A stretch of DNA of 63,053 bases, filler included, from Pelomyxa schiedti (lineage: Eukaryota; Protista; Evosea): NCBI GenBank assembly GCA_020536535.1. It is 16 parts of 16 records of this genome, joined end to end, with 100 filler letters (N's around TTAATTAATTAA, not from the genome) between each part and the next. Parts side by side here need not be neighbours in the genome. Positions count along the whole stretch, not along the records: positions 17,261 to 36,275 come from JAHLWZ010000409.1; 15 more parts are not named here. One strand, given 5' to 3'. Below the pieces are notes generated by a model. The model had not been told where the DNA came from. It made no database searches and saw nothing but the letters and a program-made list of their open reading frames with translations. Shown one piece after another: positions 17,261-36,275 of the stretch (positions are counted from its first letter, which is position 1; each line of letters starts with the position of its first letter). The position numbers were made by a program, and so were the translations under genes.

Positions 17261-18032
17261 GCAAGGTGCTGGTTGGGGATTCGGTGTGTTGTGTAAAAGT
17301 ACAACCACAACACAGTGAGGGTTAACCAAAACACATTTCTGAAGAATTCCTCCATCAAGTACGAGAATGTCAGCTACGTTGGGGGCGACGTCGGCATCCC
17401 AGTGTGTCACGATAATAGACAGACACCTTGCCGACTCGTCGGCAGCACCGAACGCGGCCGCGTGGGTCACAAACCTCGCGTGCCATAATGCTGGTGTGTG
17501 TTGGGCGCATTGCATACAAAGCGGATCCCACTAAAATGTAACAATAAGGTAGGATCCGGGAGTTGTGTGGGGGGAAGGAACCAAAGGACACGCCTCGCGA
17601 GGAATTGCTGTTAGTTCTTGACCAATTGGTTGCCCAAATAGAAGCCCCAAACGTGAGTGCATCACGACGAAGACCGTGCCAAAAATTGTATTACCACTTG
17701 CTGCTTGGAATTGACGAAACGCAGGTGTTCGACTATGTGCGTTTAATGGAAGCAATCACTGCCCGCATTGTCGACATACTCCTTCAAATGTGCCGCGACT
17801 TTATCCCTCAGGAAGATCATGCACTTTTCAAACAGATTCATCCTGTTCCTGTCATTCCATTTAACGAACCCTGGAGTGCTCAGATTGGTGAGTGCCCCGG
17901 ATTGAATTTCCTTTTTTTTTGCCTTGTTTACTAACAAATCAGTGCAGATATTGCCTTTGAGGGTGGTGGTGAAGGTGGAAACTGTGTGGCCTTTCCGAAC
18001 CCTAATAATTTCGGAGAGACACAGATAAGGGC
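17261..18032 (+). repeat. second copy (probably alternate haplotype) of 33505-34291
   Basis: Near-identical sequence with a 15-nt deletion at a CGTTG microhomology and scattered substitutions. Bounded by gaps. Confidence 0.85.
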
Positions 18033-18638: not shown

Positions 18639-21600
18639 ATGCAGAAGACTAGCCGAGGAGCAACAGGGAGACGAGGGGGAGCCTCGTGGTGGAACACCAA
18701 CACGTCGCGCTCAGTCCTCGACACCACCGCGAACTACAAGCCCACCAACACGTCGCCGTCGTCTCCATCCACATCCGCATCCACCACGACCACGGCCACA
18801 CCCAGCACCAGCACCACCACCCCGTCCACGCCGGGCGCAGAGGGCGGGCGACGAGGAGGAGGAGGCGCCAGGGGACGCGGGGGCGGGCGAGGGCGAGGTC
18901 GGGGCCGAGGGGGCCAGCGATACGCAGGGGCCACCGGCGCAAATTGGTGGGAGAAGCCCCCCGCTAACGTGTGTACAGTTGCCTCCCTCCCCCATCCACC
19001 ACGCCACCTCATCGTACGCACCCCAGCCTCTCACTTTGGGCTTATGGGTTGTTTGTTGGTATCCTCATGTTCGTGGGGGTGTGTGTTTAGGATTCTAGAT
19101 TTGCTATTGAAAGTAGAGATGGTAGATTTAAGGCACCTCCGTCCACACTGGGCAAGATTGCAATTGACCCCAGGTTCCAGTCTGCTCTCAGTCTCGATAC
19201 TAGTACTCCACGCGAGTTTGGTTGATTTCCTCTTTTTTCCCCCCCTATTCAGTGAGGGCTGACAGATTAATTCACGCAATAGAGCCCTCTATTGACGAAT
19301 TTGGTCGTCCTATTGCTATTGCTGAAGCACTGGAGGTAAAACCATACCAAAAGGCCATGAAAGACTATTATTATGTTGAAGGCGGAGGCAATTCCAAGCC
19401 AACAAAAAAGGATGCCACAGCTGAGGAGCATGAGAAAGAGGAGGAGAGTGAGGGAGAAGACAAAGAAGCTAGAAACAATGAGAGCGGCGAGCAAGAAAAA
19501 GAATCAGAATCGGAATCGGAAGAGGAAGAGGAAGAGGAGAAAGAAAGTGAGAAAACAGCTGCAGCTGAGGGAGAGGCAGGTAGCAAAGTATCTGAACCTG
19601 AAAGTGAAGAAGAGGCCGAAGAAACTGAATCACTGGAAGAAAAGGTATCAGACAGCGAACCTGAAGAAGCCATTCCAACTTCCAGACTTGCTGTGGTGAA
19701 CCTTGACTTCACTTCAGTTTCGGTGTGTTCCATGTTTTTCCTTTTTCCTTTAGTTACGTTGTCAAATCCAGGCAACAGATTTGTTTGTTGTGCTGAGTTC
19801 TTTTATCCCCTCTGAAGTTGGAACAATCCTCAAAGTTACTGTCTATCCCTCTAACTATGGGCTCAAAATGATGGAAGAGGTATAAACAAATGGAGAGTTT
19901 CACTTTTTAAATTTTCTAGGAACGAGTGCATGGCCCTCCACAGAGCCTGTTTGAGGCCAACCCTGAGCGTGATGAAAGCGATGAAGATGAAGAAAGTGAT
20001 TCAAGTGATGATGATGCAGAGAGTAAAACTTCAAACAATGCCAATGACAGTGATGCCTCTGACGTACCTAATGTGTCCGATCTCGAAGAAGTAGAAGAGG
20101 ATTCGGATGATGGTTGATCAATACCCCAAATAAATGGAACTCACAAGTGGACCAGAACCCAAAGATCCGGATGTTGATGAAAGAATAGATTACAATCTCG
20201 ACTGGCAATCGAGAAAAGGTTTGGGGAAAGCCAAAAGCGCAAATAGTGGTGTAAATATGAACTACCTGAGGGCCTATGAGGAGGCAAGGCTGAGGTTGTT
20301 TTTTTTAAACCAGGTTCATATAATCAATTCTCATAGATATTACTACGCTGTGGTGGAGTGCAGTAATGTCGAAACTGCTAAAGCTCTTTTCGGAAGTGAA
20401 GCTAACGGGATGCAATTAGAATGGCTTCCTGCTGGTCTAGTTGAGTTGCAGTACATACCTGAAGATCAAACATTCACCAACCAACCTAGGGATGAAGCTT
20501 CTTCCATTCCACCTAACTACCAACGCCCTCACTTCAAAGTACCTATCCCAACCACGTCTTTCATTTGCTAATGATGCCATTGATAGCAATACACCACTCT
20601 CTCTTGGGATGAAGACATGGAAAGAAGGAAGATCCTCAAATCGAATTGGATGACAATTCTCAGGAACCAGTAAGCCTCTCATACTTCCCTTTGAAGAAAA
20701 CTCAATCTATGTAATTAGTGACTTCGATCGCAAGGCACTTGAAGCCCAGCAATTTTTGGCATCTGACTCAAGTTCCGACGAAGGTGAGGAGGCCACTCCT
20801 GAGAGCAAGTACCAATGGATCCCTTAACTTACTGAAAATTCATTATGAATTCAGGGAGAAAAAACAAAAAGAGAAGATTAACAAGCTCCGAAGTGCATAC
20901 AAAGAGCTGGTGGGCAAATATGATGATGCACCAGTCCTGACAAAAGTTCCCACAGGCTCTGCCACAGATTCCAAGGATTCTTCAGCCGAATCTTCCGACC
21001 TGGTTGAGGAGGAGTCGGGCAATAAGGAAGCAACTTTCAAGCTTGGTCTGGAAGAGGTTGGACAGAGGCTTGTAGACAAGAGGAAAACCCAGGTTCGTTT
21101 TAATCTCATGTTCATGTATCTAATATTTCTTTCAGTCACAAAAGCTGACTGTATGGGAGACATATCTACAAAAACGTGCTGAGAGAAGGAAGAAAATGGC
21201 AGAGCTCAAAGATCACCGGAAGAAAGAAGGAGCATGTACAGTCTCACAGCCGAATTGCTTTGTTGTTCTGATCTATATTAGCTCTGCACGAGAACCTTGC
21301 TGATGAAAATCAAAGAAGCCGAGCTCAACTAGAACTTCTGTTAATGCCGGAGTCAACACAAGATGATGAAGGCAAGGACGAAGTTAAGGACAAGGAACGC
21401 GGGAAAAAACCCGGCAGTTTGGGAGAGGAAGTGTCATCATCCTCTGATGAGGACAGCAGTGCCATGAGAGCAATGGGTGTATCAAAAAGAAAAAAAGCTT
21501 TCGAGTTAGATACAGAGGATCCCAGGTTCCGGTCTCTATTTACATCAAAGGACTTTGCCCCAGACCCAACTAATCCACAGTAAGCTAACAGTTCCGCTCC

Positions 21601-22472: not shown

Positions 22473-24238
22473 ATGATTCGCGTATATCACGAGAAGCAGG
22501 TTGGCGACCAACCCTTGACTTGTGGGATGTGGGGTTTAATCCATTTTGTTGCGGCATTTAGGCGTCGTCGTTGTGCGGGGTCCATTGTTTGAATTGCCTG
22601 ATGCAGGCGCCATTGTTCACCGAAGTGGACCTCAGTAGAATTGCAAACGAACTGGACACAAAAGAAAAGGTATTGCCGCCAACCATTAAATTTAACCAAG
22701 CTCGTTTGGTTTTTTCAAAATTACTCCAAGAATATTGTAATTGCGTGGTTAATAGAGTGGTAATTCACTTACACTATTGGTAGGAGCTTATGATGGCACA
22801 AGGTGCTTTGTTCTATCAGTTGTTTCTCGTATAACAATTGACAGGAACCGAATCCAATGATTTTCTAAAGTACATGGCTGTATGTACTTTCTAATAGTCT
22901 TAACTCGTATTTAACGATACCTTGTGGTCTATTATTTATTATCTACCTATAAAAAAAAAAAAAAGGAAGACTCCTTCAATGTATCAGATGATGGAAATTT
23001 TTCCTTGTCTGTATTGACCACAGCTCTTGCACAATTTAATTTGACTTGTACAACATTGAAATGTATGCCGGAGGCCCGAGCAAATCCAGAGTGAGAATTT
23101 TTCCACTCTCTCCCTGGCTTATAAGTCGCAGCGCCCAATCAGCATTTTTATGTAATCTGTCACATCACTGGTTTGCGATTCGGAAAATTGAAGGTATAAA
23201 GTCATTTTTGAAAATTACACACTTATCCAGCTTCAGGTTATTGGTTTAATTTGAACAGCATATCAAAGGCTCCCATGTACCTGTCAGACTTTTATTTGAG
23301 GTCTCATGGTTTTCGTTCGAAATCCCTCCTGAACTTTGTTAGTGTCTATCTCGGCGAACTGGAGAGGCAAGGCTACCAAGTGTTTGTTGTGATTGGCGAA
23401 TTGCCTCGCTCAGATTCCCTCCGAATGTCTGCCGGTGGTACGCAACACCCTACTCTTCCGCTTTTCCTTTTGTTCTCTCATTCAATTTATTCACCACAAC
23501 ACAAGGCGATGGAACGTGGCACAACATCCAGCTTGGATACGACGGGAAGCCAATCCCGCCGCAACCACAGCGGCAACCACAGCGGCAACCACAACGGCAA
23601 CCACAACGCACCACCCCCAACACCCACTACTACCACAACAACAACAATAGTAATAACAGCAGACCCGGACGCCGCAAAGTAGCCTTTGACAACNNNNNNN
23701 NNNNNNNNNNNNNNNNNNNNNNNNNNNNNNNNNNNNNNNNNNNNNNNNNNNNNNNNNNNNNNNNNNNNNNNNNNNNNNNNNNNNNNNNNNNNNGCAACCA
23801 CAGCGGCAACCACAACGGCAACCACAACGCACCACCCCCAACACCCACTACTACCACAACAACAACAATAGTAATAACAGCAGACCCGGACGCCGCAAAG
23901 TAGCCTTTGACAACGACCTTGCCACGGCCATGGCCCTCAGCCTCAGCGAGCACCACGAAGATGCAGAAATTCCACCGGAACTCGTCCAGTACTATGACTC
24001 AGAAATCCCCACTGCCATAGTCACAACACCCACATCCACACATCCCACCAGTTACACCATCAGCAGTAATACCAACACTCCCTCTGTTGACACACAATCA
24101 CAATCACCAGCACACACAGTTGTACCACCTCCACTACCCACTCCATCCACAGATACCAATGACCAAGGTTCTTTGGAGGATTCAGAGTTCTTGGCTGCTG
24201 TCCAACTCAGTCTTGCCTGCAACACTCAGAAGGACTGA
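22473..24238 (+). CDS. ATXN3: ataxin-3-like deubiquitinase (Josephin domain + 2 UIMs)
   Basis: YHEKQ...LCGVHCLNCLMQ (catalytic Cys), HHWFAIRK (His), WFNLNS (Asn). UIM-like FDNDLATAMALSLSE and EDSEFLAAVQLSL. Spans one scaffold gap with overlapping flanks. Confidence 0.9.
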
Positions 24239-24427: not shown

Positions 24428-25854
24428 TTAGGATTTTGCTGGCTTGGGTTTGGAGAATTGCGGGAGCTTGTGGTAGCTGAGGCGTGGTCTGTGGGGTGCT
24501 ATGCGTTGCGGTGATGGTGTGGTTGCTGTTATCAGTGTTTCGCCAATACAACAAGCTGCTGATGTAACGGTTTGGGAGAAGTTGGGTGAGAGGGGTGACA
24601 GGGGTGATGAACTTTCTCGTACCGGACTTCCATCCTTGGGGGAGCGTGAGGGTGGCGAGTTTGAGGGCGAGAGAGGCCGGAAGGGGTTTTTGCCGGAAAC
24701 CCGGAGAGTGGGCGGAGTTGTGATCACTGTGTTGCGCAACTGCCGAACTTGTGGATGGTTAAAATTGTGTTGTTTTTAGCAAGATGAAACTACCTTTCAA
24801 AGGAGCTGCTACAGAATCTTGGTACATGGCAAAGGCCTGTGGAGATACGAACAGGTTGAATCCCAGTAAGCAAAGCAAAGAGATTTCCAAGTTATTCATT
24901 TCCTCTAAGCTAATGCCTCCAACCCGAGCATAGAATTCATTACTGTAGAAAACGTCTTCCCAATGCTTGAGACTAATAACTGTACTGTGAGAGTGTGAGA
25001 AATATTGCCAGGAGAATATTTTGTTGTACCACGTAAGTATTAATCTGTGCATGTTGTATTCATGTAATTCGAATGCAGGGTGGTCCTTAAAGAGATTGTC
25101 GATATACATCAAAGTGAGTACAAGAGTTTCCGCTGTTGCAGCGTATTTGAGAAGCCTGAAAAATATTAACTACTGTCAATGGATGGTAGTAATTGGAGTA
25201 CCTTTCAGTATAAGCTAACAAAGGGACAGAAGAGGGATCTTTTGAAAGAAACAAAGCCAGTAAAGGCTCTGATGGAGGGGCAACATCTACTGGCTCACGG
25301 GTACTTCTTGCAAGTAAGTGAGACAAAAAGCGAGAGGCCAGGTCCGAAAGCGGCGGTCTCCTGGGTGAATTCGCTGTGGAATTTTTGGCAGGTGGAGCCT
25401 GTTCTACTGCGAGCTCTGATTGCGAGGTTGTAAAGCAAGCGGCACTGGCGCGCTGTGGAGTGGGAATGAACGGCCGGCGATAGTGCTGGTGGTGATGGTG
25501 GCTGTGGCGATGAGCGCGTTCTGGCGACGGTGTGACGTTGCTTGTAGTAATCACGCTGGAGCCCGTGATGGAGGGCAACGGCGACGCCAAGTGGTGCGCG
25601 GCGTGGCTCGAGTGGATCCGTTCGCTAGACGATGTCCTCGTGCTGGACACTCCCACGGGAGATGGCTTGCGTGTGTCGCTCGGGCCAACCGCGGGCACTG
25701 GCGACGCGTGTCCTTCGTCGCACTTACGGTGGCTGTCCGAGCGCGAACCGCTGCCACTAGGCGAAGACGACAAACTGCGCCTGTGTTTGCTTGCGTTTGT
25801 AGTTGTGTCAGATCTCTCTGGTTCCGGACACACCACGTCTCTTCCTCCCTCCAT
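24428..25854 (-). CDS. PHO80/cyclin-U family cyclin with S/P-rich termini
   Basis: IYIDNL...NMHRLILT...KHWEDVFYSNEFYARVGGISLEEMNNLEISLLCLLGFNL is the PHO80-type cyclin box. Likely start MEGGRD. Confidence 0.88.
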
Positions 25855-26352: not shown

Positions 26353-29300
26353 ATGACGACCAGCACTGCAGCGACTCCCAGCGTTTTCGGGATGCCGCTG
26401 GGTCGCGCGGTGCCGCAGGGATCTACGATCCCGGACCCGGTGGAGCGCACGCTCGACATCCTCAACGCCATCGCCCCGGTGCAGAGCGACCTCTTCGCCA
26501 CGTCGCCTGCCGTCGACGCCGCGGTGGCCGCACTAAAGGAAAAAACGGAGGAGTACAATAGTTTGCCGGCGCAGGCGAGGACGGGGGAGCACCCTATCTT
26601 GTTGGAGGAGAACCCGCAGGTAATTCATTATTATTGTTATCTTTGACTGGTGTACTCCTTTTTTTCTTTTTTTTTTTTTTTCGTTTGCTGGCAAAAAAAA
26701 AACCGGCTATGTGCGAGCTTTAAGATGTGATTATTTTTCGAGTTGCACAATTTTTAAAAATTAAGTAAGTTTATATTGTAGAAAATAGTTTAACAGTTTG
26801 GGATTTCCAGGTAGTTGCTGGCTTGTTGGTGTTGTATTTTAAAATGCTGCCTCACCCAGTGGTGCCACCCAAATTTTATTGGACTTTCGTTAGAGTCATT
26901 TCCATGACTAATACACGTGCAAAGCTGGCTCAATTGAGAATTCTTCTTCACAAGCTACCTCCGGTACTCTGGTTACATTTTCTTCTGGTTTCACCTTTTA
27001 TCTAGGTTTGCAAAACCATAATTTTGCAACTGGGCTCTTTTTTCAATGCATCCCAACTGCCAGCGGAACAAATTGGTTTGATTTTCGCTAGATATCTGCT
27101 AAGGCCAACAGTTGAGTTACCTGAGGCAACCCCTGCTCCTTGCTTAAGAGTGGTTGCTTTATTGTGTGAGAACAGTGAGTATCTGAATATCCACACTGTA
27201 TGTCCCAAGGTAATTCCACTTCTACTAATCTTGGAAAGGAAACACCAACATTGGATGCCGCGGCACAAGCTGAACCAGAGAACCCTGCCGAATTCAAACT
27301 TGAAGCGATTGCTCTTTTTGATTATTCTGGTATTTTCACCTCCAACTTGCACATACTTATGTACCCAGATCCTGACCCAAACATACTGAAGTTCTCAAAA
27401 AATGACCGCATCCAATTGGTTGATATTCACCCAGATGACTGGCTGGAAGGAGTATTACGTGTTGGAGGAGTGCCAGGTGTGGCAGGGTTTCTACCTGTTG
27501 GCTACGTTGACATCATACCAATGAACCCTCCTGTTGCAAAAGTGGGGCGTGGTGTTGCNNNNNNNNNNNNNNNNNNNNNNNNNNNNNNNNNNNNNNNNNN
27601 NNNNNNNNNNNNNNNNNNNNNNNNNNNNNNNNNNNNNNNNNNNNNNNNNNNNNNNNNNACTGGCTGGAAGGAGTATTACGTGTTGGAGGAGTGCCAGGTG
27701 TGGCAGGGTTTCTACCTGTTGGCTACGTTGACATCATACCAATGAACCCTCCTGTTGCAAAAGTGGGGCGTGGTGTTGCTCCGCCACCAGTGGGACGGGG
27801 TCGTGCACCTCCTCATCCTGGCCAGCCCCATATGGTTCCTATCCCCAAAGCTTCTCCTTCCCCTGCTGTAACACCACACCCCCCTGGTCCCGTCTCACCT
27901 ACACCCACCCCAACACCCATCGTGTCCCCTACCCCCACTGCAAGCCCAACTCCAAACCAGCCACAAGCACAGCCAACAGTGGTATCTTCCCCTACAGTGG
28001 CAACATCTACACCCACACCAACGCCCGCTCCAGTGCCTCAAGCAACACCGACACCGTCAGGCCCTACGCCAACACCTCTGGCAACATCAGGGCAGACATC
28101 AGCTCCCACACCGGCACCTACACAAACACCGACGGCAATAATGACGCCAACGCCGACGCCAACAACACCGGCGCCCACTCCCACTCCAACACCAACACAA
28201 GCGCCAACGCCAACTCCAACTCCAACTCCAGCGCCACTGCCAACAGCAACACCACATAGATCACCTTCACCACCAACCCCTGCGCCACCTGTAACACCAT
28301 CTCCACTGCCACCCACTCCCTCACCCACCCCTACAGTAACTCCAACCCCTACACCTCAATTTCAGCCTGCTCCACCCCCAAATGGTGTTTCTCCTCTTCC
28401 TCCCCCTAAGTCAGGGCCTTCACCACCACCCAAGTCAACACCAACCCCACCACCAAAGGTATCACCTCATACACCCTTACCAACACCGCCGCCTAAAGCG
28501 ATCCCTCCAACTCCACCACCAAAGTCATCTACCGTGCCGCCTCCACAGCCAGTGGCCCCTCCAACTCCTGCCATAGCACCTCCAACAACACCGCCTCCTG
28601 CTTTCGCGCCGCCATCAACCCCCCCACCAACTGCAGCACCACCCTTATCCGGTCCACCACCTCCAGGCCCGCCTTCTTCACTTCCCCCACCTCCAATTGC
28701 ACCACCACCACCACCCAGTGCTCCTCAGGCCAGCGCTGACCCATATGCTTATGATGTGATCCTCCCAATTACATTATTTGACGTGTAATATGTACATATA
28801 GGAGTATGCATTTGATTCTCCTGCCCCAACGTCACCCCAAGTAGAACCCAGTCCAAACCCAAGGGACCCAAGTCAACGGTTGAGTGCTTATGGACTGCAT
28901 GAACCCCCGACCAGACTAAGTGGTGATGGTTTCACTGCTGAACCAGCTAAGGTAAAGTTGATTTTTTCCATACCCTAAATAACTAAATTAGACTGAACAG
29001 TCCAATGGAAATGGAACAAATACTTCTGCACCTCCCTCTCATCCACCTCCCACCTCAGCACCGCCACCACAGCGACCTCCACCAAGTAGGACTGGTGGGC
29101 AAACACAACAAAGACCGGCAACTAAGCCCGCAGGAGCAAGCTCCGATGAGTGGAAAATTGTTGTGGTTGGCTCTGGTGGTGTAGGTAAATCTGCGATGAC
29201 AATATCATTTGTTCAGAATCACTTTGTTGGTATTCCCCATTAAGTAAATACCCTCCCAAAACTCATTGACACGACAGAGGAATATGATCCCACCATTGAG

Positions 29301-29979
29301 GACAGGTTCAGCTTTTCCGTACCTTTTTATAGCATCCTAAAATCACTTCTAGTTACCGCAAACAAATTGGAGTTGATGATGTGCCTTGTATTCTTAATAT
29401 TTTGGATACAGGTAACAATGTGATTTTTTTTTTTCTTCATCTAACTCAATATACATAGCCGGGCAGGAGGAGTATGATGACCCTTATTTCCCGATACAGA
29501 AGAAGCATTAACATTTACCACAGATACTCAGCCATGCGAGACCAATACATGAGGACTGGACATGGCTTCTTACTTGTCTTCTCACTAACAACCCGAGCCA
29601 GTTTTGCTGAGGCCAAGTCGCTTCACGGCCATATCCTGCAGGTTTGTGAGGACAATTCGGTTTTTTCCCAACACTCTCAATACAGGTGAAAGACCTTGAA
29701 CGAGTTCCCCTAGTACTAGCCGGAAACAAGTGCGATCTCCCTGTACTTCAGGTAGGCCTGAATTCCATCCAATGCTTTTTCTCTAATTACCCAACAAAGG
29801 TAACAGCACAAGAAGGGGAGGCCGCCGCTGCCCTATGGGGAGTCCCCTTCCTCGCTACATCAGCCAAGACCAGAACCAATGTAGACGAAGTATTCGCGCA
29901 GCTAGTCAGAGAAATCCGCACTCACCATGTACCCGATGTCGACCCCCGCAAAAAGAAGATGAAGTGCCGATTCCTGTGA
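26353..29979 (+). CDS. predicted RhoGAP(pseudo)-SH3-Pro/Thr-rich-Ras GTPase fusion protein ending in CRFL
   Basis: RhoGAP motifs [22 protein letters not shown] and [14 protein letters not shown]3 ALFDY...LKFSKND...DWLEG...GFLPVGYV. Ras boxes [36 protein letters not shown] and TSAK. Phase-0 introns 28756-28801 and 28952-28991 link the Pro-rich exon in frame to Ras. The domains are near-certain; the fusion is a splice prediction. Confidence 0.75.
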
Positions 29980-30303
29980 GCTTCCGTTCCCACCTGAATG
30001 CCTTCACAAGATACTCCCCATTTCACACAATAATGAGCTATTCCACCCCGTGCCACCCGCTGCCAATCAATTCCTTACCACCATCCCTCCCATCATTGCC
30101 AAACATAGCCTCGTTTGTTTTCTGATGCGGTGTAACACAATAAATAAATTAAAAGGAACCGCGAAAACCTCATGATGCAAAATTACTTTTGACAAATAAA
30201 ATCCATGGATGTGTATCTAAGAAGTTCTGATACCGTTTTTTGTGTTTTTGTGCAGAGGGTTTTTTAAGTACCATAGTAGTGATAAGTACCATAGTAGTGA
30301 TAA

Positions 30304-33300
30304 CTACTGCCTTCGACGTTTGTTTGTTGCTTGTAAACATGAGTCAATGTAAGCTTCTACTTCACGCAGTTGGGCGTCATTATAGGTATCGAGGTCCAGT
30401 TCAAGGTCCTCATCACCCTATTGTAATATGTTAGTTGATAAAGGGTGTAAAAGGGAATGATTAACTATCGGTTGCCGGGTGTTGAGAAGCTCCAGCACGT
30501 GTGTAATCTGCTCAGGTTGAAGTAAATTAATCTTGTCCCCCAGCTCTCTCTTTTCCTCGAGTGTCAGAGGGATGATGGGTAGCCTGAAGGTTTATTAGTT
30601 ACTTGTTATCCGGATTTTATTAATACAAATAAGCTAGTGATATACTTAGCGCCGGGCCGCTTTCTGGTGCTGCTTTGTTCTACTGCTATGGCTGCAACAC
30701 CCGGCAGTGTCGGTGGGGAAACTACTGATGCCTTTAGAGGGGAATTCATCTCTAAATGACTAGCCGCTAGTTTCTTTTCAAAGAAGGCCCGCAAGTCGAG
30801 TGACCATTGATGTATCTCGGTGCCTGGAACGTTGTACATACATGCATTTTTCCAGACCTTGAAAATTGTTTTAGTGGCACGAACAAGCTCTGTATTGTAT
30901 TGGGAACCTGCTGTACATCCTCAACAAAGTCACGTACTTCATTGTACATTCCGGTTTCAAGTTTTTCCTGTGAGTTACTAGTTACTAATGAATAAGTCTT
31001 TATTGCGTTGAGTTCACCTTAATAGTGCCCAGATCCATTGGCTTCTTGATGACTTCAAAGTAATCAGGAGCCCCATCCCTCTGTGGGTTGACAGGTTGAT
31101 TGAACACACTTGCCAGTTTATGCTTCCTCAGAGAATTGATTATGGATTTACAGTTGCGGAGAGCCTTTGCATCAGTTGTGGAAGCGGTTGGTGATTGTAC
31201 AGCTTCAGGGTGTTGTTCTACAGGAGACCGACCTTGTGAAGCATGATGGTCCCGTCTGTGCCGCGCCTTGGGTGCTGCTCGTTCAGGAGTTGGGGTGTGT
31301 AAACCCGCACTTGGTGGTTGGGTTGTGTTGAGAGTGGGCACTAGTTGGGTTTTGATGGGCAAAGCTGCCAAGACAGAAGCTAAATCTTCTGGCTTCAGTT
31401 TACAAAGATGTTGGTATCCAAGTTCATTGGGATTTCTGCTTTAAATAAATCTCAGTGCCACCAAATTCGGGAATTACTGGATGCACAGCATTGCCAAGTC
31501 CACACAAAGTAAAAGATTCTGTGCAAAATTTCCTTGCAAGCGATCCAGTAAAGAAGGAACAACCGAAAGATTATTCCTAGCATAATGGCATAGATAAACC
31601 AGTACTAGTTCCTGTTTGGGAAAATGAAACTAGGCACCGGTCCTATTTCAAGTACCTTAAGCTCCGGTAAATTCAGCTTATTACTAACGGACAGTAATGG
31701 GACGAACGTGTTAAAATCTAAATATGCAGTTTAGGGCGGGAGACCAAGCCAATAAAACCTTGGTTCGTTTCGAGGGAGACAATGTAACCAGTGTATATCC
31801 ACTCTAGAAACAGCTTCCCTGTTGCTACTCTTTTTGGAGACTTCAGTTAGTCCCAGCTTGATGTTAAGCCACACACGTTGTCTCAGGCATTGGAATCATT
31901 GTAAGATTTGGGGAAGCCTGGAAAAGTTGACTGAAGCCCATGCATCTGCATTGTATAAGAACAAAAATATTGTCTGTTGGGTACCTCGCAGCCAGTATAC
32001 ATTTATTGGCCGTCAAGTTGCCATCTGAAAAGGCAAGAGTAATATCTGGGTACAGATTCTTGCGGAAGATCTCTGAGAGAACGGAATCAGTGGGGGAGGG
32101 GAAATTGTCAACAGTTGCAATGTCTCTTAGAGCTTTGAGGGTTACTGTCTTATAGCAGTAAGTGAGAGGCCATACAGGTAAGAATGATTGAAGCAAGAGG
32201 CGTCAGCCCAGTTGAATTCTTCATTGAGAGGCAGGCCATGCTTCCATTTTGCACTAATAAACTCGCAATTTCCATGTGACCTTTGTTGCAAGCAAGATGA
32301 AGTGGGGTGTGACCCTGTTGAGTTGGGGCTGAAGCAAAAAAAAAGTCATGCTAAGAATACAGAAAACGAAGCTTACCATCAACTGCCGCACCCAATGAAA
32401 GAAGAACTTGGGCAGTTTTCAAGTGACCCCTTTTTTTAACAAGGTTTTTTCGTTGTTTTGGTTGTTGAAAGAAACCTGAATACAGCAAAATGCAACGGAG
32501 TCCAAGCATCTACATCACGGACGTTCACTCGTGCACCATACCTATTACCACTCTGTTAAATCGTATGCAATAATTGCTGTACTTGGTAAGGACATTAATG
32601 CACCCAATCTGGCCATTCCTTGCGGCATAATGCATGGCAGACGTTTGATGGGAAGTAATAATATTCACTGAGAAAAGGTAAAAAGATAGAATTCACAGAG
32701 GAAGAAAGATGGTAGCCAGACCATCTGCTCCGTTGGCAGCAAGAAGTTCCAAAGTAAGGGGCTTTCCAAATACAGAGGCATAGTGAATAGCATATTGACC
32801 GTGCTCATCAGGCCGATTTATCATTTCACTGACACTCTTCAGAGGATCGGCACCTGACCTAATTGCGGTATCACGGCATTCAGATAGTATCTCTTTTACC
32901 TGTAACCCATGAGTTAGTTAGCGAAATAATTTCCCCTGTAAAAAAACAAAAAACAAAAAAAAAAAAAAAAAAGAAAGAAAGCCAAAAAAACCAAAGCAAC
33001 AACCCCCAAAAAAACCAAAGCCCCAACACAACAGACGACACCTTGTCAATATCACCAGTCTCGGCAGCCATGTGCAGCACCGACCTCGTTCCACTCACAC
33101 TCTTGTCGAATTTCTTCCAGTTTTCATCCCTGGCGTCCGTAGCGGCCCCCGACGTCGTCATAACCGCCATCCCCCCCGACGCCGCGTCCTGCTGTGTCGT
33201 CGCCCACCCCCCCGCTGCGATCGTCGTGCTAGTGCCGCCGCCGCCGCCGGCGGTGTTGGCCGTGGTGGTGGTGGTGGCAGCAACTACATTGTCGGGCGAC

Positions 33301-33504: not shown

Positions 33505-35317
33505 AAGGGGCAAGGTGCTGGTTGGGGATTCGGTGTGTTGTGTAAAAGTACAACCACAACACAGTGAGGGTTAACCAAAACACATTTCTGAAGAATTCCT
33601 CCATCAAGTACGAGAATGTCAGCTACGTTGAGGTTGGTGCCGTTGGGGGCGACGTCGGCATCCCAGTGTGTCACGATAATAGACAGACACCTTGCCGACT
33701 CGTCGGCAGCACCGAACGCGGCCGCGTGGGTCACAAACCTCGCGTCCCATAATGCTGGTGTGTGTTGGCGCATTGCATACAAAGCGGATCCCACTAAAAT
33801 GTAACAATAAGGTAGGATCCGGGAGTTGTGTGGGGGGAAGGAACCGAAGGACACGCCTCGCGAGGAATTGCTGTTAGTTCTTGACCAATTGGTTGCCCAA
33901 ATAGAAGCCCCAAACGTGAGTGCATCACGACGAAGACCGTGCCAAAAATTGTATTACCACTTGGAATTTGGAATTGACGAAACGCAGGTGTTCGACTATG
34001 TGCGTTTAATGGAAGCAATCACTGCCCGCATTGTCGACATCCTCCTTCAAATGTGCCGCGACTTTATCCCTCCGGAAGATCATGCACTTTTCAAACAGAT
34101 TCATCCTGTTCCTGTCATTCCATTTAACGAACCCTGGAGTGCTCAGATTGGTGAGTGCCCCGGATTGAATTTCCTTTTTTTTTTTTGCCTTGTTTACTAA
34201 CAAATCAGTGCAGATATTGCCTTTGAGGGTGGTGGTGAAGGTGGAAACTGTGTGGCCTTTCCGAACCCTAATAATTTCGGAGAGACACAGATAAGGGCAT
34301 GGGTTAGTACACAGCTCCGACTTGGGATGTATGGTTTATTTTTCTGAAGGAAGGACTGGCAGCTAGGCCAGGCAGAACACATCGGGATTTCTTCTTCAGG
34401 TGCTACCGATCAACACCGCACGAGGTATTTGCATCTCTCTCTTGCGGAAGTTATAATCGGTGTTTAGGTAGTGCACTGCTTCCAAAGTAAGCTCAAACAA
34501 TGTGACAAGGGTGGCTGGATAGCGGAACATGATGCAAGGTATAATTTTGAATTAAAGTGTCTAAGATAATCTCGTCAGCTTTTTGAGTGGAACTTTATTA
34601 CAAGTGCTCTTCACTAGTGATGCGGACCATGTTCTCTTCCCAGAAGGTCTCTTTGATGACATCATGCTCAATTGGCATGAAGAAGTACAATTTTTAATTG
34701 CAACCACTGAATGCAAACAAGTTTACATTCCTCTCACAAGGTAGAACATGAAAAGCGGAAGTTCCATCACATGGAATCGGAGTACCTTTCCTGGCGCACT
34801 TCCTGTGGATTCCAGACACCCACCGAGGTAGTCACAGGCACTCCCGGCGCCAGTTACTACTTCAAAAACAGGTACCCAGATAGTAGAAGCCGTAATCCAT
34901 TTTCCCACGTTCACACAAACACAGGATTGCACTGGAAGCCATGACCGCGGACCTGTCAATAGCAGCCGAGGAACTACACCTGTGCTTCGCCACTGTGCTC
35001 CACGGCGACCTGCGCAGTGGTTCTCGTGTGCTGCCCCCATCAGTAATATCCCTCTACACAAGCTCTTCATGACTCCCATTCAATTTGTCAATCAAATCGA
35101 CATGGTGGAGTGCGTGACACTACTCTCCAATCTTCGCCGATCAATAACCCTTCGGGGAACCTTTTTATGTGATGGAGAGGAGCATCGTTCACATCGAAGC
35201 GAGGTCACAAGCGCTGGCTTTTGTGATGTGCCACCACTCGAGGTGCGGGACACTCAGTCCTGCCGGAATACTCCCTGCCACTGTGTTGCGCGATATTTCT
35301 CAGTTATGGGTGACGGC
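33505..35317 (+). pseudogene. decayed unidentified coding sequence with multiple in-frame stops
   Basis: Long reading-frame segments (…KADPTKM*Q*GRIRELCGGKEPKD…, …GLFF*RKDWQ…, …IIGV*VVH…) interrupted by TAA, TGA and TAG. No family recognised. Confidence 0.35.
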
Positions 35318-35417: not shown

Positions 35418-36275
35418 ACTGGCTGGAAGGAGTATTACGTGTTGGAGGAGTGCCAGGTGTGGCAGGGTTTCTACCTGTTGGCTACGTTGACATCATACCA
35501 ATGAACCCTCCTGTTGCAAAAGTGGGGCGTGGTGTTGCACCGCCACCAGTGGGACGGGGCCGTGCACCTCCTCATCCTGGTCAGCCCCATATGGTTCCTA
35601 TACCCAAAGCTTCTCCTTCCCCTGCTGTCACACCACACCCCCCCGGTCCCGTCTCGCCTACACCCACCCCAACACCCATTGTGTCCCCTACCCCCACTGC
35701 AAGTCCAACTCCAAACCAGCCACAAGCACAACCAACAGTGGTATCTTCCCCTACAGTGGCAACATCTACACCCACACCAACGCCCGTTCCAGTGCCTCAA
35801 GCAACACCGACACCGTCAGGCCCTACACCAACACCTCTGGCAACATCAGGGCAGACATCAGCTCCCACACCGGCACCTACACAAACACCGACGGCAATAA
35901 TGACGCCGACGCCGACGCCGACGCCAACGCCAACGCCAACGCCGACGCCAACCCCAACACCAACAACACCGGCGCCCACTCCCACTCCCACTCCAACACC
36001 AACACCAACTCCAACTCCAACGCCACTGCCAACAACAACACCACATAGATCACCTTCACCACCAACCCCTGCGCCACCTGTAACACCATCTCCACTGCCA
36101 CCCACTCCCTCACCCACCCCTACAGTAACTCCAACCCCTACACCTCAATTTCAACCTGCTCCACCCCCAAATGGTGTTTCTCCTCTTCCTCCCCCTAAGT
36201 CAGGGCCTTCACCACCACCCAAGTCAACACCAACCCCACCACCAAAGGTATCACCTCATACACCCTTACCAACAC
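35418..36275 (+). repeat. second copy (probably alternate haplotype) of the SH3/Pro-Thr exon at 27659-28475
   Basis: Same protein sequence with mostly synonymous changes and a different number of PT dipeptide repeats. Bounded by gaps. Confidence 0.85.

Follow-up and report, generated by a model that had tools for sequence, protein, structure and literature searches.

The window analysed here is a stretch of 63,053 nucleotides (nt) from the genome of the protist Pelomyxa schiedti (assembly GCA_020536535.1), composed of 16 parts joined end to end with filler, and all positions are counted along it. Within the part taken from JAHLWZ010000409.1 (17261–36275), the plus strand at 26353–29979 probably holds one gene for a "large Ras" of about 908 residues, in which a RhoGAP-like domain, an SH3 domain and a Pro/Thr-rich linker of about 430 residues precede a canonical Ras with a CaaX end. 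When a false scaffold gap was collapsed and introns with GT–AG borders were removed, an open reading frame of 2727 nt (908 amino acids) without internal stop codon was obtained. The model consists of 14 exon pieces, or of 13 messenger RNA (mRNA) exons once the false gap, which splits one exon, is collapsed. The order of domains in the model is RhoGAP-like (residues ~11–196), SH3 (~229–287), Pro/Thr-rich linker (~297–724) and Ras (~729–908). The features of the locus are as follows:

26353–26619, plus strand: exon 1 (residues 1–89), with the start codon (first in-frame ATG) and the N-terminal third of the RhoGAP-like domain (VFGMPL..., DLFATS at 46–51)
26811–26963, plus strand: exon 2 (residues 90–140), RhoGAP core, recognised by Pfam PF00620
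27006–27174, plus strand: exon 3 (residues 141–197), presumed C-terminal third of the RhoGAP-like domain, degenerate; from the gene model
27210–27329, plus strand: exon 4, short linker and start of the SH3 (AIALFDYS); from the gene model
27369–27558, plus strand: exon 5a, remainder of the SH3 up to the contig end; last 121 nt repeated past the gap
27559–27779, no strand: spurious scaffold gap (100 N) and duplicated 121-mer; an exact suffix/prefix overlap to be collapsed, not an intron
27780–28755, plus strand: exon 5b, Pro/Thr-rich linker, open frame; RNA contigs from 28176
28756–28801, plus strand: intron of 46 nt, GT..AG, phase 0; spliced out in RNA, present in the DNA contig
28802–28951, plus strand: linking exon (residues 626–675), no in-frame ATG; RNA contigs and model
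28952–28991, plus strand: intron of 40 nt, GT..AG, phase 0; spliced out in contigs of all three RNA runs
28992–29229, plus strand: exon 8, final ~53 linker residues, then Ras N-terminus and helix 1; Pfam Ras and RNA contigs
29278–29305, 29353–29411, 29459–29471, 29524–29641, 29686–29751 and 29800–29979, plus strand: six further Ras exons, all joints seen in RNA; end KKKMKCRFL and stop codon
29980–30146, plus strand: 3′ untranslated region; RNA contigs end at 30138–30146, at AATAAA (30139–30144)
35418–36275, plus strand: second haplotype of the SH3 end and Pro-rich exon, at the scaffold end; outside the gene model, which it supports

The gap at 27559–27658 (100 N) is spurious. The 121 nt before it (27438–27558) are identical, letter for letter, to those behind it (27659–27779), and once the duplicate has been collapsed (a shift of 221 nt) the SH3 frame runs without a break into that of the Pro-rich region. 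Another gap of 100 N (23694–23793) is likewise flanked by an exact overlap of 121 nt (23573–23693 and 23794–23914); the other two gaps of the same piece show no overlap. For the assembly, SPAdes was used with a largest k-mer of 121, and its contigs were then linked by P_RNA_scaffolder (PMC8887013). Both overlap-flanked gaps are therefore accounted for by contigs of k=121 that the scaffolder joined with 100 N, so that the gap within the gene is the scaffolder's filler between de Bruijn contigs overlapping by k. One genomic DNA contig (run X4, 1138 nt) and one RNA contig (run X1, 370 nt) with the second-haplotype variant at 27780 cross 27659 into the upstream sequence. The contigs break at the gap because the second haplotype begins to diverge at exactly 27780.

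Spliced transcripts and the reading frame into Ras

Reads from three single-cell RNA sequencing runs (2023) and one genomic DNA run of the same study (2021) were compared over 27659–30250. Each RNA run yielded one long spliced contig (1516, 1613 and 1253 nt; depth 16–19) that begins within the Pro-rich exon (at 28271, 28176 and 28522). In all three contigs position 28755 was joined to 28802 and position 28951 to 28992, both introns having GT..AG borders, and all six Ras introns were removed. The microexon of 13 nt at 29459–29471, which encodes part of switch II (DTAGQEE), was included in all three, with CCGGGCAGGAGGA between its joints. RNA depth was zero within the intron 28756–28801; the depth of 10.1 in the bin at this first linking intron equals 16.6 times the exonic share of the bin. 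If this intron were retained, a stop codon would be met at 28786–28788. The genomic run contained the unspliced sequence in one contig of 4723 nt, and X4's own DNA contig spans 28247–30250. The Pro-rich exon is joined to Ras by splicing in transcripts.

Further upstream, RNA was represented by a contig of 370 nt (over 27659–27795, depth 4.4, continuing upstream) and by one of 151 nt (over 27713–27863, depth 2.3); the SH3 end is transcribed. The joints before it were taken from the gene model. The exon 3 donor (GTGAGT at 27175) is predicted, as is the intron of 35 nt between exons 3 and 4 (27175–27209), for which an alternative of 29 nt (27210–27238) is also in frame. The predicted intron of 39 nt inside the SH3 (27330–27368) is in frame as well and would, if retained, add 13 residues after ALFDYS. 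Canonical GT–AG introns, matching frames and the lack of space for another gene suggest that the RhoGAP-like exons are joined to the SH3 exons.

In-frame methionines of the spliced model are found at residues 1, 14, 101, 121, 288, 318, 421, 744, 792, 797 and 903. In-frame ATG codons are absent between residues 421 and 744 and from the linking exons; the G domain begins at about residue 729, so that Met744 is already past the P-loop. A stand-alone Ras can therefore not be made from these transcripts, and the product does not have the stand-alone length (~180–220 amino acids) of the Ras subfamily. Since the long RNA contigs begin 3′ of the Met421 codon, the transcripts must reach further in the 5′ direction to yield a functional Ras.

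The frame of the linker was followed through sequence variation. Over 27780–28365 the two haplotypes differ at 19 sites, 16 of them synonymous third positions and three non-synonymous, and by two in-frame indels (42 and 12 nt) in the Pro/Thr repeats; upstream of Met421, 12 of the 13 differences are synonymous. Seven more variants were found in the RNA contigs, six synonymous and one non-synonymous in the model frame: among the synonymous ones are those at 28834 (first linking exon) and 29126 (second), and the variant at 28910 is non-synonymous. Haplotype and RNA variants together comprise 22 synonymous and four non-synonymous changes. The whole exon, SH3 end and linker alike, is therefore translated in the frame that leads into Ras, and such constraint on the coding sequence of the linker speaks against a start that is only internal. 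The Pro/Thr repeat tract at 28143–28276 is polymorphic in length, and short X4 DNA contigs break or rejoin there.

Much of the preliminary description is borne out by these data. It had proposed the two phase-0 GT–AG introns 28756–28801 and 28952–28991, and both were removed exactly in one contig per RNA run (three of three); the reads across 28755/28802 and 28951/28992 that it had named as a check were found in the RNA contigs as both joints. Its statement that the linking exons lack an in-frame ATG and that Ras has no start of its own agrees with the methionines of the spliced model (none from 421 to 744). The link from SH3 to Ras had been placed wholly within one contig; this holds from the C-terminal half of the SH3 through Ras, whereas the SH3 itself straddles the gap. 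As for the order RhoGAP–SH3–Pro/Thr–Ras, the step from the Pro-rich region to Ras was confirmed by spliced RNA, and that from RhoGAP to SH3 stands as a gene model.

Domains of the predicted protein and the search for relatives

Pfam and other homology searches were carried out with the exon pieces, one by one. Exon 2 was assigned to Pfam RhoGAP (PF00620; 1.3e-7, profile positions 55–105 of 148), and its best solved matches were ARHGAP15 (7.3e-5) and then GRAF (1.4e-3). In the HMMER alignment its GLLVLYF stands opposite GALKMFF of ARHGAP15 and GLLKQFF of ARHGAP11A, with Val96 in place of the conserved Lys. Exon 1 alone gave no significant Pfam or Protein Data Bank match; by Atlas language-model features, 84 of its 100 nearest clusters were RhoGAP (best score 0.95, 170 shared features). 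With exon 3 alone no RhoGAP was recognised by Pfam or Atlas, the latter returning helical-repeat noise only. DLFATS (residues 46–51) lies 41 residues before profile position 55, where GIFRxS is expected, an assignment by motif and position with no significant alignment. None of the arginines of exon 1 (residues 18, 32 and 76) stands in a GIFRxS-like context. The stretch before DLFATS resembles helix A of RhoGAPs such as p50RhoGAP, which serves as a lead.

The functional hallmark of RhoGAPs is an Arg/Lys pair (Arg282 and Lys319 of p50RhoGAP), and human RhoGAP-domain proteins without the arginine finger are inactive (PMC8305018). Class III plant formins have lost the same Arg and Lys and are proposed to retain GTPase binding (PMC2386819). 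In the protein described here the residue aligned with Lys319, which is conserved in active RhoGAPs, is Val, so that by alignment the Lys is lost. The arginine finger has likely been lost too (Arg to Ala), as the motif-level alignment indicates, and the domain would best be read as a pseudo-GAP, that is, an inactive GTPase-activating protein (GAP) fold. The residues taken as signs of inactivity in the preliminary description thus fared differently: Val for Lys was recovered by HMMER, and the equation of DLFATS with GIFRxS stands at the level of the motif.

The SH3 was recognised as Pfam SH3_1 on 27212–27556 (3.6e-5; 23.7 bits, gathering cutoff 22.9), despite the 13-residue intron read-through in the query, and the characteristic motifs ALFDYS and PVGYVDII are present. 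In the linker (residues 297–724, exons 5b to 8) Pro makes up 37% and Thr 16% of the residues. It has five PxPPPK motifs (residues 505–548), which conform to the class II SH3-ligand pattern PxxPx[KR]; PPPK occurs five times in the linker (0.42 expected), a count reached in none of 2000 shuffles. Polyproline runs follow at residues 592–612.

Pfam Ras was found on exons 8, 12, 13 and 14 (profile positions 1–24, 61–97, 103–116 and 122–161; exon 8 at 9.7e-6). All G motifs are present: the P-loop GSGGVGKS (G1, residues 735–742), switch I YDPTIEDSY (residue 757) with Thr35 and switch II DTAGQEEY (residue 782) with Gln61, the exons of both switches being confirmed by RNA, and NKCD (G4, residue 841) and TSAK (G5, residue 869), aligned with KRas. 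The protein ends in KKKMKCRFL followed by the stop codon, a CaaX box with a polybasic second membrane signal. The effector loop, Gln61 and the KKKMKCRFL end, all named in the preliminary description, are accordingly retained in the spliced model. The best solved matches of the domain were KRas4B chains (2.5e-14), with an alignment that takes in the polybasic tail, and identity to vertebrate KRas is 61.6% over 164 residues. A CaaX box ending in Leu would predict a geranylgeranyl group, not a farnesyl one. Geranylgeranylation and plasma-membrane anchoring are predicted from the polybasic stretch together with the CaaL box.

In the RNA and DNA runs there were also contigs whose match is confined to the effector-loop and switch II exons (29277–29299 and 29521–29551), past which they diverge. 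Because these loose-end contigs diverge past the two exons, they are taken to represent further Ras paralogues in the organism.

Relatives were sought with the same exon pieces. The 97-residue read-through of Ras exons 13 and 14, searched against 1.84 billion representatives, gave 1134 matches with a best identity of 55%, among which were no self match and no orthologue. The longer matches comprised tandem Ras–Ras proteins, a protein with a B-box, an S/T/P linker and Ras-CaaX (P0113), a copine–Ras chimera, and vertebrate Ras proteins extended at the N-terminus by unmatched low-complexity sequence; RhoGAP or SH3 was present in none of them. With a Pro-rich piece of 365 residues (region 170–365), 8000 low-complexity candidates were scored in a word-indexed protein search and none was significant, in a procedure whose length filter shuts out full-length relatives of exon-sized queries. 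The protein libraries lack this organism's own proteins, and negatives from them are weak. Scans of metagenome loci with exon 2 (RhoGAP) and with the SH3 exon gave no relatives. A literature search on the RhoGAP–SH3–Ras architecture or on multidomain protist Ras proteins returned nothing pertinent; the Mastigamoeba genome paper mentions only expanded small GTPases. Neither the exon-piece nor the literature searches, all of them weak negatives, yielded this combination and order of domains with a fully canonical classical Ras in C-terminal position, and nothing in them contradicts the preliminary description, whose author knew of no protein with such an order.

Comparison with known proteins and alternative readings

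In the textbook view, Ras proteins are minimal switches that stand alone, with regulators and scaffolds supplied by other proteins. The Ras described here resembles the classical ones (H/K/N-Ras, and KRas4B in particular) in all five G motifs, in an identical switch I (YDPTIEDSY) and in the polybasic and CaaX end. It differs in length (908 residues, about 725 of them before the G domain, against ~189), in Ser instead of Ala at residue 11 and in a CaaX box that ends in Leu.

The closest analogy in design is offered by the large Rabs (Rab44, Rab45/RASEF and CRACR2A/Rab46; PMC8303950), in which N-terminal interaction domains are likewise combined with a C-terminal prenylated GTPase domain; here, too, one open reading frame contains N-terminal interaction domains and a C-terminal prenylatable G domain. 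The large Rabs differ in that the present protein combines Ras with a pseudo-RhoGAP and an SH3, and there is no sequence kinship outside the G domain, so that the analogy is one of design, not homology. CRACR2A has a proline-rich region too. Other multidomain small GTPases are RhoBTB, Miro, Roco and p190RhoGAP. The last (ARHGAP35/ARHGAP5) carries Ras-like GTP-binding and RhoGAP domains in one polypeptide, and the Pfam family RhoGAP_pG1_pG2 turned up among the library-match annotations; in p190RhoGAP, however, the GTPase is N-terminal, the GAP is C-terminal and active, the extra G domains are pseudo-GTPases, and there is neither CaaX nor SH3. The order RhoGAP-then-SH3 is shared with the srGAPs and with the GRAF/ARHGAP26 family (among solved structures, the GRAF GAP ranks second as a match to exon 2); these proteins differ by their BAR/PH or F-BAR domains, their active GAPs and the absence of Ras.

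Inactive RhoGAP-like domains are found in class III plant formins (PMC2386819) and in human ARHGAP36, OCRL1, INPP5B, DEP1/2, FAM13B and the BH domain of p85, with the finger replaced by a small residue (PMC8305018). The class III formins are alike also in the change from Lys to an aliphatic residue (PMC2386819) and in that their pseudo-GAP precedes a polyproline region. None of these domains is known to be fused to a Ras G domain, and the assignment here is made from sequence only. Among the library proteins, P0113 and the tandem Ras–Ras proteins P0001, P0002, P0005, P0006 and P0010 resemble the present one in having Ras with a polybasic CaaX end behind a low-complexity linker and another domain; their N-terminal domains are different ones, with no RhoGAP or SH3, and they share no more than 62% identity with this Ras. 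Classical Ras proteins with N-terminal extensions thus exist elsewhere, and large multidomain small GTPases and pseudo-GAPs are already known kinds.

A number of observations weigh against the reading as one long protein with a pseudo-GAP. All three RNA runs were made from a single sample, within the study that also produced the genome. RNA contigs are absent at 27864–28175, the most repetitive Pro/Thr stretch, and none of them extends from the RhoGAP or SH3 exons as far as Ras; RNA depth is 2–4 upstream and 16–18 downstream, which may reflect 3′ bias or an internal start. The introns between exons 3 and 4 (35 or 29 nt) and between exons 4 and 5 (39 nt) are predicted only, and an ATG at 27200 sits in the SH3 frame. 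Exons 1 and 3 were not recognised by HMMER, the arginine-finger assignment being without statistical support, and no orthologue showing a conserved fusion was found in the exon-piece searches.

The drop in depth can be read in terms of two products. An abundant mRNA would then start within the Pro/Thr-rich exon and encode linker and Ras from Met421 (~488 residues), and RhoGAP–SH3 would be made from a separate weaker transcript or as part of a rare long isoform. The step from a depth of 2–4 at 27659–27863 to 16–18 from 28176, with no contig at 27864–28175, fits this view, and the Met421 codon (~28141) is the last in-frame ATG before Ras. However, all long RNA contigs begin 3′ of Met421, so that their 5′ ends are ends of assembly or coverage (one ends in Nextera adapter), and variation over 27780–28175 is synonymous in 12 cases and non-synonymous in one, so that the sequence upstream of Met421 is translated as well. 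The P. schiedti transcriptomes are Smart-seq2 libraries, and genes of this organism have a mean of 7.43 introns (PMC8887013); such libraries together with the Pro/Thr repeats explain the drop. Two products are accordingly considered unlikely. It would be far more surprising still if the fusion were an artefact, in which an adjacent RhoGAP–SH3–Pro gene and a normal Ras gene had been merged by chimeric or read-through contigs, by a scaffold join, or by both. Contigs over two genes are no proof of a single transcript, and the scaffold does hold misplaced haplotigs; yet both linking introns are precisely spliced, the frame is open from the Pro-rich exon into the P-loop, an independent Ras would have no in-frame ATG, the stretch from the Pro-rich region to Ras lies in one DNA contig, and the variants of the linking exons are mostly synonymous. 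We regard the artefact as highly improbable.

The same architecture could also carry an active RhoGAP that uses a non-canonical catalytic residue and switches Rho/Rac off where Ras is anchored. Finger-less GAPs do exist, Rap1GAP using Asn (cited in PMC2386819), and the finger was aligned here at the level of the motif only. Against this, the second basic residue is lost as well (Lys to Val), the domain is so degenerate on both flanks that HMMER does not detect them, and human RhoGAPs without the finger are inactive (PMC8305018). An active GAP is thus given a small chance, below that of two products.

The preferred reading remains the single "large Ras" gene. Its Ras domain would act as an ordinary switch between guanosine triphosphate (GTP) and guanosine diphosphate at the membrane, and the long flexible linker would tether an adaptor module (the SH3, its ligands and the pseudo-GAP) at the site of Ras. 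By analogy with finger-less RhoGAP domains, the RhoGAP-like domain may bind a Rho/Rac-type GTPase without stimulating hydrolysis, and activation of Ras would in this way be tied, in cis, to the arrival of partners from the Rho family or of regulators of actin. If the SH3 and the PxPPPK repeats meet within one molecule, autoinhibition could result; contacts between molecules could lead to multivalent clustering and recruit actin regulators. Partner binding, prenylation and the loss of GAP activity are all deduced from the domains. Rho binding and hard-wired Ras–Rho crosstalk, as suggested in the preliminary description, are predictions of the same kind. A more specific proposal, which we put forward tentatively and with low confidence, is a lineage-specific "self-scaffolding Ras", in which the dead RhoGAP would serve as a reader of Rho/Rac-GTP and the SH3 would be autoinhibited by the five PxPPPK repeats, the whole acting as a Ras–Rho coincidence detector or as a hub for clustering actin regulators.

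A KRas4B-like Ras as the C-terminal domain of a protein of 908 residues would amount to an experiment of nature in which Ras is wired directly to the Rho/actin machinery. It would extend the concept of the "large small GTPase", known for Rabs, to classical Ras, and would be a further instance of a GAP fold put to new use, presumably for binding.

Scaffold-end copies and neighbouring genes

The segment 35418–36275 is 93.6% identical to 27659–28486 and starts with the same 121-mer. The other scaffold end (17261–18032) is also a near-copy, being 96.6% identical to 33510–34298. Tandem gene duplication was considered for 35418–36275 and dropped. A haplotig is the better reading because the two duplicated segments lie at different distances from their copies (16249 and 7759 nt), the 121-mer node is shared, and the differences are mostly synonymous and were seen in reads from the same sample. 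Both scaffold-end copies look like haplotigs added by the RNA-based scaffolder, not like real duplications. For annotators of this genome it is of practical importance that gaps flanked by overlaps of k=121 can be collapsed and that haplotigs occur at scaffold ends.

Upstream of the gene, in divergent orientation, lies a minus-strand gene for a PHO80-type cyclin (Pfam Cyclin, 1.2e-16; 24762–25112), and downstream, in convergent orientation, a minus-strand bromodomain gene (31003–31371; 1.6e-9). Between these two genes there is no room for another one. Further away an ESF1-like RRM protein is encoded on the plus strand (20134–20568; 1.2e-14).

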